Part shown: positions 6,869 through 14,554 of the stretch, piece by piece
How the letters are laid out: the number at the start of each line of letters is the position of its first letter
How positions within the stretch are numbered: position 1 is the stretch's first letter
Assembly: GCA_039096225.1 (NCBI GenBank)
Contig: JBBPEB010000034.1
Coordinates: 186,001 to 250,000 of the forward strand
Direction of reading: 5' to 3'
DNA from: Blastocystis sp. Blastoise
Taxonomy: Eukaryota > Protista > Bigyra: Opalinata
DNA length: 64,000 nucleotides
Notes under the pieces: generated by a model
Seen by the model: only the letters and a program-made list of their open reading frames with translations
Told to the model about the DNA's origin: nothing
The model's database searches: none
Position numbers and translations under genes: made by a program

Positions 6869-7216
6869 ATTTTATTTTAGGTTGCTTAAAGACTTTTCCT
6901 CTTTTTCACTTTTTATATAAGTTTCTATGTAATACTGTTTACATTATAAAACATTATGATAACTTGGTTTTGTTTACAGTTTTTATATTAAATATATATA
7001 CATATAGCTTTTTGAAATATAAATATATATTTTTTATAACATGCGTAAAAAATAAATTATAAATTATCATATGAATAATAATATATATATATATATATAA
7101 TCATATTTATCACAATAATTTTTAATAAAAAAAAAAATACATATTAATAACAAATAAAATAAAATAATATATATCAAAAAAAAATAATAATAATAATAAT
7201 ATTTCTTCAAGAATGT

Positions 7217-7232
7217 GGTGTTAAAAAACACC
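7217..7232 (-). promoter_or_regulatory. Histone 3' stem-loop (H4 copy 1)
   Basis: Minus strand GGTGTT-TTTT-AACACC followed by ACATTCTTGAAGAAA. Confidence 0.85.
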
Positions 7233-7322
7233 TGAGAAAGAAAATATATATATATAATCATATATATATATATATTATAAAAAAAAAAAATTATATAAAA
7301 AAATTTTTAAATAAAATTAGAT

Positions 7323-7634
7323 TTAAAATCCAAAACCATAAAGAGTTCTACCTTGTCTCTTAAGAGCAAGAACGATATCAGAAGCAGTAACAGTTCTTCT
7401 TTTAGCATGTTCAGTATAAGTAACAGCATCACGAATAATAGATTCAAGGAAGACTTTAATAACAGTACGGGTTTCTTCATAAATTAAACCAGAAATACGT
7501 TTAACACCACCTCTACGAGCAAGACGACGAATAGCAGGTTTAGTAATACCTAAAATGGTATCACGCATAACTTTACGATGTCTCTTAGCACCACCTTTAC
7601 CTAATCCTTTACCACCTTTACCACGGCCAGACAT
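7323..7634 (-). CDS. H4: Histone H4, intronless
   Basis: [21 protein letters not shown]...TLYGFGF, 103 aa. Confidence 0.99.
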
Positions 7635-7968
7635 TTTTCTTTAAATATATTATTAATAAATAAATAAATAAAAATTATTTATATAAATATAAATTATTTA
7701 TTGTTTATATTCTATATTCTTTTTCAAAAAACTATATCAACACCATTTCTTCATTCTCTTTCTTCCTATATATATAGGTAGTATTATCCTTCTTTATAAT
7801 ATAAAATAATCAAGATTACTTTATAAAAACAAAAGTCAAATTATATAATTATAAGATAAATAATTGGTTAATATAATTGATTTTAATAAATATTTGATAA
7901 TTATCCAATAAAATAGAGATTGAATGAAAGAAATGGATTTTGTTTAAAAATAGAATAATAATTGAGAA

Positions 7969-7980
7969 TTGGCGGGTAAT
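7969..7980. promoter_or_regulatory. E2F-like site in the bidirectional H3/H4 promoter (duplicated at ~13632-13643)
   Basis: TTGGCGGGTAAT stands out as GC-rich in an otherwise AT-rich intergenic region; it is one mismatch from GGCGGGAAA. Confidence 0.35.
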
Positions 7981-8159
7981 TGAGTCGATAATCTTGGTTT
8001 AATATATATAATTGTGGATAAATAGAGAATAAATAATGGGAAAGTGATAAAAATGAAGAAAAGAATAAGAATTGAAAAGAAAGAGGATAATAAGAATTGA
8101 ATAAAATTAAATATTTATTTAAATAGATTAATAAATAAATTAATAGATAATAATAAAGA

Positions 8160-8567
8160 ATGGCTCGTACTAAGCAAACTGCTCGTAAAAGTACTGGTGG
8201 TAAGGCTCCTCGTAAGCAATTAGCTACTAAGGCTGCCCGTAAGAGTGCCCCTGCTGCTGGTGGTGTTAAGAAACCTCATCGTTATCGTCCTGGTACTGTT
8301 GCTCTTCGTGAAATTCGTAGATATCAGAAGAGTACTGAACTTTTAATTAGAAAACTTCCTTTCCAAAGACTTGTTCGTGAAATTGCTCAAGAATTTAAAC
8401 CTGATTTAAGATTCCAAGGATCTGCTGTTATGGCTCTTCAAGAAGCTACTGAAGCTTATCTTGTTTCTATCTTTGAAGATACTAATCTTTGTGCTATTCA
8501 TGCTAAACGTGTTACTATTATGCCTAAGGATATGCAACTTACTCGTAGAATCCGTGGTGATAAGTAA
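8160..8567 (+). CDS. H3: Histone H3, intronless, canonical/replicative-type residues
   Basis: [21 protein letters not shown]..., with A31 and the SAVM motif. Confidence 0.99.
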
Positions 8568-8771
8568 ATTATTTAATTTATTTTTATAATAATAATAATA
8601 ATAATATTATTATTATTTTAATAATTTAAATTATTTTTATTTATCATTTATTTGTGATTTCTAATTTTTTTTTTTTAAATATTATGGAATTATTATGTTT
8701 AAAATAATATATTTTTTTTTTAAACTAAAATCCATATATATATATTTTTTATATATAATAATTTATTATCA

Positions 8772-8787
8772 GGTGTTTTTTAACACC
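8772..8787 (+). promoter_or_regulatory. Histone 3' stem-loop (H3 copy 1)
   Basis: GGTGTT-TTTT-AACACC followed by ACATTTTTTGAAGAAA, ~205 nt after the stop. Confidence 0.85.
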
Positions 8788-12710: not shown

Positions 12711-12828
12711 ATCATATTATTGTATTATTATTCTCTATAACTAGTTGTATTATATCTACTTTGTTTTCGTTTCTATGTTATAATAAGGTATTTCTTGTTT
12801 AGTAATAAATTTTTCTTCAAAGAAATGT

Positions 12829-12844
12829 GGTGTTAAAAAACACC
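12829..12844 (-). promoter_or_regulatory. Histone 3' stem-loop (H3 copy 2)
   Basis: Minus strand GGTGTT-TTTT-AACACC followed by ACATTTCTTTGAAGAAA. Confidence 0.85.
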
Positions 12845-13044
12845 TGATAATAAATTATTAATATAAAAAAATATATATATGGATTTTAGTTTAAAAAAAA
12901 AATATTATTTTAAGCATAATAATTCCATAATATTAAAAAAAAGAAAATTAGAAATCACAAATAAATGATAAATAAAAATAATTTAAATTATTAAAATAAT
13001 AATAATATTATTATTATTATTATTATAAAAATAAATTAAATAAT

Positions 13045-13452
13045 TTACTTATCACCACGGATTCTACGAGTAAGTTGCATATCCTTAGGCATAATAGTAA
13101 CACGTTTAGCATGAATAGCACAAAGATTAGTATCTTCAAAGATAGAAACAAGATAAGCTTCAGTAGCTTCTTGAAGAGCCATAACAGCAGATCCTTGGAA
13201 TCTTAAATCAGGTTTAAATTCTTGAGCAATTTCACGAACAAGTCTTTGGAAAGGAAGTTTTCTAATTAAAAGTTCAGTACTCTTCTGATATCTACGAATT
13301 TCACGAAGAGCAACAGTACCAGGACGATAACGATGAGGTTTCTTAACACCACCAGCAGCAGGGGCACTCTTACGGGCAGCCTTAGTAGCTAATTGCTTAC
13401 GAGGAGCCTTACCACCAGTACTTTTACGAGCAGTTTGCTTAGTACGAGCCAT
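13045..13452 (-). CDS. H3: Histone H3 (second copy, identical protein)
   Basis: ORF translation identical to 8160-8567. Confidence 0.99.
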
Positions 13453-13977
13453 TCTTTATTATTATCTATTAATTTATTTATTAATCTATTTAAATAAATA
13501 TTTAATTTTATTCAATTCTTATTATCCTCTTTCTTTTCAATTCTTATTCTTTTCTTCATTTTTATCACTTTCCCATTATTTATTCTCTATTTATCCACAA
13601 TTATATATATTAAACCAAGATTATCGACTCAATTACCCGCCAATTCTCAATTATTATTCTATTTTTAAACAAAATCCATTTCTTTCATTCAATCTCTATT
13701 TTATTGGATAATTATCAAATATTTATTAAAATCAATTATATTAACCAATTATTTATCTTATAATTATATAATTTGACTTTTGTTTTTATAAAGTAATCTT
13801 GATTATTTTATATTATAAAGAAGGATAATACTACCTATATATATAGGAAGAAAGAGAATGAAGAAATGGTGTTGATATAGTTTTTTGAAAAAGAATATAG
13901 AATATAAACAATAAATAATTTATATTTATATAAATAATTTTTATTTATTTATTTATTAATAATATATTTAAAGAAAA

Positions 13978-14289
13978 ATGTCTGGCCGTGGTAAAGGTGG
14001 TAAAGGATTAGGTAAAGGTGGTGCTAAGAGACATCGTAAAGTTATGCGTGATACCATTTTAGGTATTACTAAACCTGCTATTCGTCGTCTTGCTCGTAGA
14101 GGTGGTGTTAAACGTATTTCTGGTTTAATTTATGAAGAAACCCGTACTGTTATTAAAGTCTTCCTTGAATCTATTATTCGTGATGCTGTTACTTATACTG
14201 AACATGCTAAAAGAAGAACTGTTACTGCTTCTGATATCGTTCTTGCTCTTAAGAGACAAGGTAGAACTCTTTATGGTTTTGGATTTTAA
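13978..14289 (+). CDS. H4: Histone H4 (second copy, identical protein)
   Basis: ORF translation identical to 7323-7634. Confidence 0.99.
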
Positions 14290-14383
14290 ATCTAATTTTA
14301 TTTTTAAAAAAATTTTTTTATATAATTTTTTTTTTTTATAATATATATATATATATGATTATATATATATATTTTCTTTCTCA

Positions 14384-14399
14384 GGTGTTTTTTAACACC
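14384..14399 (+). promoter_or_regulatory. Histone 3' stem-loop (H4 copy 2)
   Basis: GGTGTT-TTTT-AACACC followed by ACATTCTTGAAGAAA, ~95 nt after the stop. Confidence 0.85.
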
Positions 14400-14554
14400 A
14401 CATTCTTGAAGAAATATTATTATTATTATTATTTTTTTTTGATATATATTATTTTATTTTATTTGTTATTAATATGTATTTTTTTTTTGTTATTAAAAAA
14501 TTATTGTGATAAATATGATAATATATATATATTATTCATATGATAATTTATTAT

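Follow-up and report, generated by a model that had tools for sequence, protein, structure and literature searches.

A histone-type 3' hairpin and a conserved downstream box in Blastocystis, with predicted genes for SLBP and LSm11

To our knowledge, U7-dependent formation of histone 3' ends has been demonstrated only in animals; elsewhere the case consists of gene presence and hairpins. According to a preprint (10.64898/2026.10.14.759114), SLBP, stem-loops, LSM10, LSM11, FLASH-like proteins and purine-rich downstream elements are nevertheless widespread outside animals, stramenopiles included. The same source reports a predicted U7-like RNA in Rozella, describes the stem-loops of stramenopiles as lying further downstream and being less conserved, and leaves Blastocystis unmentioned in its main text. 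Lopez and Samuelsson (2008), as cited in that preprint, predicted the histone stem-loop and SLBP in protists and green algae. A literature search returned no paper tying Blastocystis to SLBP or to histone hairpins. The subject here is the set of histone genes of Blastocystis sp. 'Blastoise', from a Russian tortoise, whose genome comprises 33.3 Mb in 34 contigs. One H2B encoded there is identical to a 'Blastoise' protein, and look-ups of the H4, H2A and H3 proteins for exact matches returned none. The window, meaning the whole stretch of DNA analysed, covers 64,000 nucleotides (nt) of contig 26 and contains two H3/H4 gene pairs, in which each gene is followed by a short hairpin and, just beyond it, by a purine-containing box. 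Together these elements form a candidate 3'-end signal. An earlier note on the window had spoken of an undescribed system; that word was too strong, as environmental protists share the hairpin and SLBP, LSM10/11 and purine-rich elements are already reported outside animals (10.64898/2026.10.14.759114).

The 16-nt sequence GGTGTT-TTTT-AACACC is found exactly at 7217-7232(-), 8772-8787(+), 12829-12844(-) and 14384-14399(+), where the earlier note had placed four stem-loops. The shuffled window gives 0 matches. The H3 and H4 genes concerned are intronless, as had been claimed. The features, in order along the window, are these.

7203..7208, minus strand: downstream box GAAGAA of H4 copy a, 8 nt past the stem (sequence and computed offset)
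7217..7232, minus strand: histone 3' stem-loop of H4 copy a (exact 16-mer; RF00032, 26.1 bits)
7323..7634, minus strand: histone H4 gene, copy a, 103 amino acids, intronless (sequence; PF00125 match)
8160..8567, plus strand: histone H3 gene, copy a, 135 amino acids, A31/SAVM type, intronless (PF00125, 156.9 bits)
8772..8787, plus strand: histone 3' stem-loop of H3 copy a (exact 16-mer; RF00032, 27.9 bits; fold)
8797..8802, plus strand: downstream box GAAGAA of H3 copy a, 9 nt past the stem (sequence and computed offset)
12813..12818, minus strand: downstream box GAAGAA of H3 copy b, 10 nt past the stem (sequence and computed offset)
12829..12844, minus strand: histone 3' stem-loop of H3 copy b (exact 16-mer; RF00032, 28.8 bits)
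13045..13452, minus strand: histone H3 gene, copy b (sequence; PF00125 search)
13978..14289, plus strand: histone H4 gene, copy b (sequence; PF00125 search)
14384..14399, plus strand: histone 3' stem-loop of H4 copy b (exact 16-mer; RF00032, 26.1 bits; fold)
14408..14413, plus strand: downstream box GAAGAA of H4 copy b, 8 nt past the stem (sequence and computed offset)

The hairpin folds into a 6-bp stem with a 4-nt UUUU loop (-7.5 kcal/mol). It shares with Rfam family RF00032 the 6-bp stem, the 4-nt loop, a G-C second stem pair and U at loop positions 1 and 3. The scores of the window copies against this model (26.1-28.8 bits, E 5e-5 to 5e-4) lie under the gathering score of 34 because of the flanks, not the hairpin; in the alignment the purine box stands opposite the A-rich downstream part of the model. 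TCA precedes the stem in all four copies, and ACATT, a few pyrimidines and TTGAAGAAA follow it. From stop codon to stem the distance is 90 nt for H4 and 200-204 nt for H3, so the two differ as previously stated. The sharing of flanks between H3 and H4 also holds as it had been described, but the two gene pairs form an inverted duplication whose arms (7128-8719 and 12893-14488) are 98% identical, and the window therefore offers two independent 3' untranslated regions (UTRs), not four. Independent replication comes from seven more hairpins elsewhere in the genome. The 4.2-kb spacer of the inverted repeat holds open frames of low complexity only, and no gene of the small nuclear RNA (snRNA) type is present in the window.

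Genome-wide, the exact hairpin occurs in 11 copies. All 11 follow an intronless canonical H2A, H2B, H3 or H4 gene, with the stem 36-204 nt past the stop codon. The seven copies outside the window belong to H2A/H2B pairs on contigs 4 and 25, to an H2A on contig 11 and to an H3/H4 pair on contig 29. H2A and H2B thus carry the same motif, a point that the earlier note had raised: hairpin and box are both present at the copies on contigs 4, 25 and 11. Matches with two mismatches are attributable to chance, as their flanks are absent and no histone gene lies close by. Variant histone-fold genes were listed by a Pfam histone search of the genome. Within 300-400 nt of the stop codon, the hairpin is missing from an H3 variant with T31, an H2A.Z-like gene, an intron-bearing CenH3-like gene and an H2B variant. 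The H3 that bears it is of the replicative A31/SAVM type, as had been suggested, whereas the T31 variant is without it. The hairpin separates canonical, intronless, paired histone genes from replacement variants, as in animals. At contig 11:93590-97000, an H2A with an SQ-type (H2A.X-like) C-terminus has the hairpin and the divergently paired H2B variant has none; in human-type Blastocystis an SQ-type H2A likewise has the hairpin. As a sequence-based assignment, the reading of the hairpin as an SLBP-type histone 3' signal, already made in the earlier note, is solid.

The second element is conserved as well. All ten distinct flanks contain the box GAA[G/T]A[A/T], with its G at 8, 9 or 10 nt past the stem; in 20,000 flank shuffles the box reached at most three flanks of ten. 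Seven flanks have GAAGAA, two GAATAA and one GAAGAT. Before the box, every flank has AC, a base that is A or C, and a T, followed by four to six bases that are mostly pyrimidines. GAA is invariant, while loci differ both in the bases separating stem from box and in what follows the box. The box had been placed at the spacing of the animal histone downstream element (HDE). It is conserved and its spacing is fixed, but a start only 8-10 nt past the stem falls at the near edge of the animal range. An AAGAAA- or AATAAA-like hexamer can be read in eight of the ten tortoise flanks and is absent in human-gut Blastocystis, which shares only TTGAAG.

The comparison with relatives draws on gut-metagenome contigs of human-type Blastocystis (GC content 41-48%). 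Their H2A and H2B genes are followed by the same stem, with a TTTT or TTTG loop, and by TTGAAG 9 nt past it; the box is accordingly conserved in relatives at the same distance. TTGAAG is followed there by A/T sequence that is likewise conserved and, about 35 nt past the stem, by a further block of purines, GAGAGAAAGAGA. The human-type cassette after H2A and H2B extends about 50 nt beyond the hairpin, and its second purine block is missing in the tortoise genome. Tortoise and human isolates share 40-42% amino-acid identity, and the tortoise clade is without the downstream element that is linked to polyadenylation in human subtypes (PMC10690189). The conservation of the box lies far beyond chance and extends to distant Blastocystis lineages; what the genus as a whole has kept is TTGAAG, at a fixed distance, rather than the AAGAAA hexamer. 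The box most likely acts as the animal HDE does. Further afield, the hairpin with CA and AC flanks is present in 72 environmental metagenome contigs, in several of them 3' of a recognisable H2A, H2B, H3 or H4. These copies usually have an ACCAA flank and differing downstream sequences, and part of the 72 matches are probably due to chance. Because the hairpin follows histone genes in environmental contigs, the stem sequence is a widespread protist type, and the box alone is specific to the Blastocystis lineage.

Proteins that could read these elements were sought in the genome. Spliced genes for SLBP and LSm11 were searched exon by exon, the exons being left unjoined; the full-length LSm11 is database record P0122. 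SLBP, whose presence the earlier note had made a test of its proposal, was found on contig 29, where three colinear exons cover positions 8-70 of PF15247 (26.8, 18.9 and 14.9 bits). One exon matches human SLBP in the PDB (2kjm, 4l8r; E 1e-4), and the last exon weakly matches fly SLBP. The translation shows a TP dipeptide and a basic pair ahead of the conserved aromatic residue, and the encoded SLBP is predicted to have an intact, complete RNA-binding domain. A second SLBP-like gene may lie at contig 22:813262-816351. On contig 8, the Sm1 exon of the LSm11 gene finds human LSm11 as its best PDB matches, and the last exon carries the Sm2 motif with a long insert before it. P0122 (323 amino acids) matches SmD2 and LSm11 (E 4e-7 to 7e-6); a separate canonical SmD2 gene is located elsewhere in the genome. 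In a profile built from P0122 and three relatives, the N-terminal motif aligns with residues 19-57 of human LSm11, a region that binds FLASH in animals, and LSm11 is the top PDB match (E 0.01). The contig 8 gene reads as an LSm11 orthologue retaining an N-terminal motif of the FLASH-binding type. A word-based homology search with P0122 and an Atlas search with the LSm11 N-terminus returned nothing besides P0122. Residues ~5-50 of P0122 form an extra helical module of about 40 amino acids at the start of the orthologue, which in a library of 1.8 billion proteins occurs in up to 22 repeats in large proteins; the database listing of P0122 gives Pfam PF28412.

The preferred reading, with a probability of roughly 0.6, is that hairpin and box are the 3'-end signals of replication-type core histones, read by SLBP and by a U7-like particle that contains LSm11. 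The proposed mechanism runs as follows. (i) The hairpin (6-bp stem from GG, UUUU loop, CA before and AC after) is the predicted site of the encoded SLBP. (ii) The sequence (U)UGAAG with adjoining A/U-rich sequence, 8-10 nt past the stem, would be the counterpart of the animal HDE. (iii) A U7-like particle containing LSm11 would recognize this box. (iv) SLBP and the particle would position the shared CPSF73-type nuclease, and the cut would fall between hairpin and box. (v) The product would be a hairpin-ended message without a polyadenylate (poly(A)) tail. Inference supplies the place of the cut, the missing tail and the guide RNA, and the U7-like reading as a whole is plausible yet unproven. 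RNA data consist of one poly(A)-selected gut metatranscriptome in the form of assembled contigs. Contigs of the hairpin-less H3 variant reach depths of 560-1900; the high-depth H3 pieces match this variant at 11 of 16 listed differences, and two pieces match in difference number. Canonical H3 is represented by a 256-nt piece of depth 3 that fits the H3 of contig 29; this run leaves the H4 gene and both 3' UTRs uncovered. One contig of 673 nt agrees perfectly with the left edge of the compared stretch, but over just 49 nt. The contig depths are a weak hint in that they fit canonical histone mRNAs without poly(A), but they are not comparable measures, and non-dividing cells would look alike.

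Several results weigh against the reading by SLBP and a U7-like particle. The box lies nearer the stem than animal HDE cores do, which would leave 3-6 nt between cut and duplex. Metatranscriptome contigs cannot show 3' ends. Searches for both LSm10 and LSm11 had been proposed, and they succeeded for LSm11 only: LSm10 was not recognized among 22 LSM-domain matches, which include just one SmD1-like gene, though small exons split by introns could escape. A second SmD3-like paralogue besides the canonical SmD3, at contig 31:255580-258765, is not LSm10-like. The U7-like small RNA foreseen in the earlier note was not found by Rfam model RF00066, by snRNA-promoter-anchored searches or by three combined patterns, and no U7-like RNA lies behind any of the 80 exact snRNA-promoter sites. 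Absence of U7 from the genome is not established by this, because the searches needed exact motifs or a coarse pre-filter: the pre-filter scored 65 of 10,653 candidates, and the promoter searches required an exact or near-exact element.

Other ways of reading the same signals have to be set against this one. Hairpin and polyadenylation might coexist, the box being part of an ordinary AAGAAA/AAUAAA-like poly(A) signal; the cut would then fall further downstream, the message would be tailed, and the hairpin would be an internal regulatory SLBP site. The hexamers held by eight of ten boxes would suit this arrangement, as would the early-diverging fungi, where loci combine a stem-loop with poly(A) features (10.64898/2026.10.14.759114). 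In human-gut Blastocystis, moreover, the box is followed by a TTGTTT stretch resembling the downstream element tied to the poly(A) sites of those subtypes. This arrangement is judged unlikely, since genus-wide conservation of TTGAAG argues against it: TTGAAG is kept across lineages while the next bases vary (AAA, CAA, TAA, AAT, ATT), so the hexamer itself is not conserved. The genome also encodes an LSm11 orthologue, a protein without a known role in ordinary polyadenylation, and the near absence of canonical histone contigs beside abundant variant H3 in the poly(A)-selected run tells weakly in the same direction. The conservation of TTGAAG argues equally against a functionless box that hitchhikes in a cassette of 35-40 nt, homogenised by gene conversion among histone genes. 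H3 and H4 of one pair do have near-identical cassettes, and some flanks are 70-83% alike past the box, though they consist of low-complexity A/T. Conversion is nonetheless hard to reconcile with an invariant GAA between a spacer and a post-box sequence that vary, or with TTGAAG at the same distance in a lineage of 40-42% protein identity whose flank is otherwise different, and it is considered highly improbable.

Cleavage without U7 stays alive as an explanation because U7 RNA and LSm10 are both missing from the results, although its chances are put slightly below those of polyadenylation. Here the box would be read by a protein, or would be mere cleavage context for a nuclease recruited by SLBP, and LSm11 would serve another function or another RNA. 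Nematodes offer a parallel, as their histone mRNAs end in the hairpin and are not known to require U7, LSm10 or LSm11, and the position of the box very near the expected cut site fits as well. The retention of a FLASH-binding-type N-terminal motif in LSm11 speaks against this explanation, and the U7 searches that seem to favour it were not exhaustive. The preferred reading, with SLBP and a U7-like particle, also has a stronger form: a genuine U7-type pathway in Blastocystis, in which a divergent guide RNA invisible to Rfam would pair with the UUGAAG-centred box near the cut, on a compressed version of the animal ruler. This form is put forward tentatively, at somewhat less than even odds. If it is true, RNA-guided histone 3' ends existed in the common ancestor of animals and stramenopiles, near the root of the eukaryotes.

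The search for the RNA yielded a description of snRNA genes in this genome. Upstream of U1, U2 and U5, about 59-65 nt ahead of the start of the RNA, lies a common element, ACTTCTAATCA; these genes also have in common a 3' box, ATTAATTTAA, which the RNA polymerase II-type snRNA genes share. Genes with the upstream element lie on contigs 8, 13, 16, 24, 26 and 32; U6 and U6atac also have a TATA-like box, and a run of T closes each of them. The 80 exact promoter sites include U1, U2, U4, U5, U6, U6atac, U11, U12, U4atac, U3 and the signal recognition particle (SRP) RNA, and the remainder fall at a candidate telomerase RNA, in repeat families and in coding or random DNA. With U11, U4atac, U6atac and U12 all found, the AT-rich Blastocystis keeps the minor spliceosome. 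Promoter and 3' box at U7-size spacing recovered only U5, and the promoter core combined with the complement of the box gave nothing in a promoter context. Unassigned promoter-driven transcripts, compared with the ten flanks, had unremarkable duplex energies and no special complementarity. Three loci (L105, L125, L126) have an exact snRNA promoter before short sequences that fit neither U7 nor an Rfam family; in L105 the TATA box is of the U6 type and a run of T follows after about 50 nt. At contig 21:894601-894951(-), an RNA of about 200 nt lies behind the promoter, has a 3' box and matches no Rfam family; it contains CCCTAACC, a possible TTAGGG template, and is therefore a candidate telomerase RNA. 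Matches to RF00066 were sub-threshold throughout. The best, on contigs 15, 28, 14 and 24, looked U7-like in having a vertebrate-type Sm site, but they are copies of the terminal part of a dispersed repeat that is at least 1.6 kb long. This repeat, whose end mimics a U7 Sm site, occurs at contigs 15:154834, 15:800929, 28:283467, 14:1243394, 24:57194 and 24:205807, among others. Two weak single-copy matches (L030, L031) are without an snRNA promoter, a 3' box or a convincing hairpin. When the complement of the box was required together with an animal-type Sm site, matches were as numerous as in the control and included no hairpin.

Since two proteins of the animal machinery, SLBP and LSm11, are encoded in this genome, the histone hairpin-processing pathway probably arose long before animals did. 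The evidence gains a clean case in Blastocystis, with an invariant hairpin on all canonical histones, a deeply conserved second element, SLBP and an LSm11 with the FLASH motif. Blastocystis is culturable, and there are several distant genomes for comparison. The bases beside the box differ between tortoise and human lineages (GAAGAAA against GAAG-C/T-AATTT), so that a candidate guide RNA could be tested by covariation. Human subtypes have aberrant general polyadenylation and keep the histone hairpin nonetheless.

Against the animal system, the likenesses are a 6-bp stem from GG, a U-rich loop of 4 nt, AC on the 3' side, a hairpin limited to intronless, clustered canonical core histone genes, and the combination of a purine-containing downstream element, SLBP and an LSm11 with its N-terminal motif. 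Unlike in animals, the 5' flank is not the A-rich CCAAA, the stem lies up to 204 nt past the stop codon as against about 25-60, the box is short and only 8-10 nt past the stem, and U7 RNA and LSm10 are undetected. The Blastocystis hairpin also scores below the Rfam gathering threshold. The predictions for protists and green algae are matched in the hairpin after core histones, in the SLBP gene and in the conclusion of an ancient pathway, and the stem is identical to environmental ones. In contrast to the stramenopiles of the preprint (10.64898/2026.10.14.759114), Blastocystis has an invariant hairpin (11 of 11 copies) and a TTGAAG box of its own. The mixed loci of early-diverging fungi resemble it in that an A-rich, hexamer-like sequence comes close after the hairpin and the U7 components are partly detectable; they differ in that Blastocystis conserves TTGAAG rather than a poly(A) hexamer and has an LSm11 with a FLASH-type motif.

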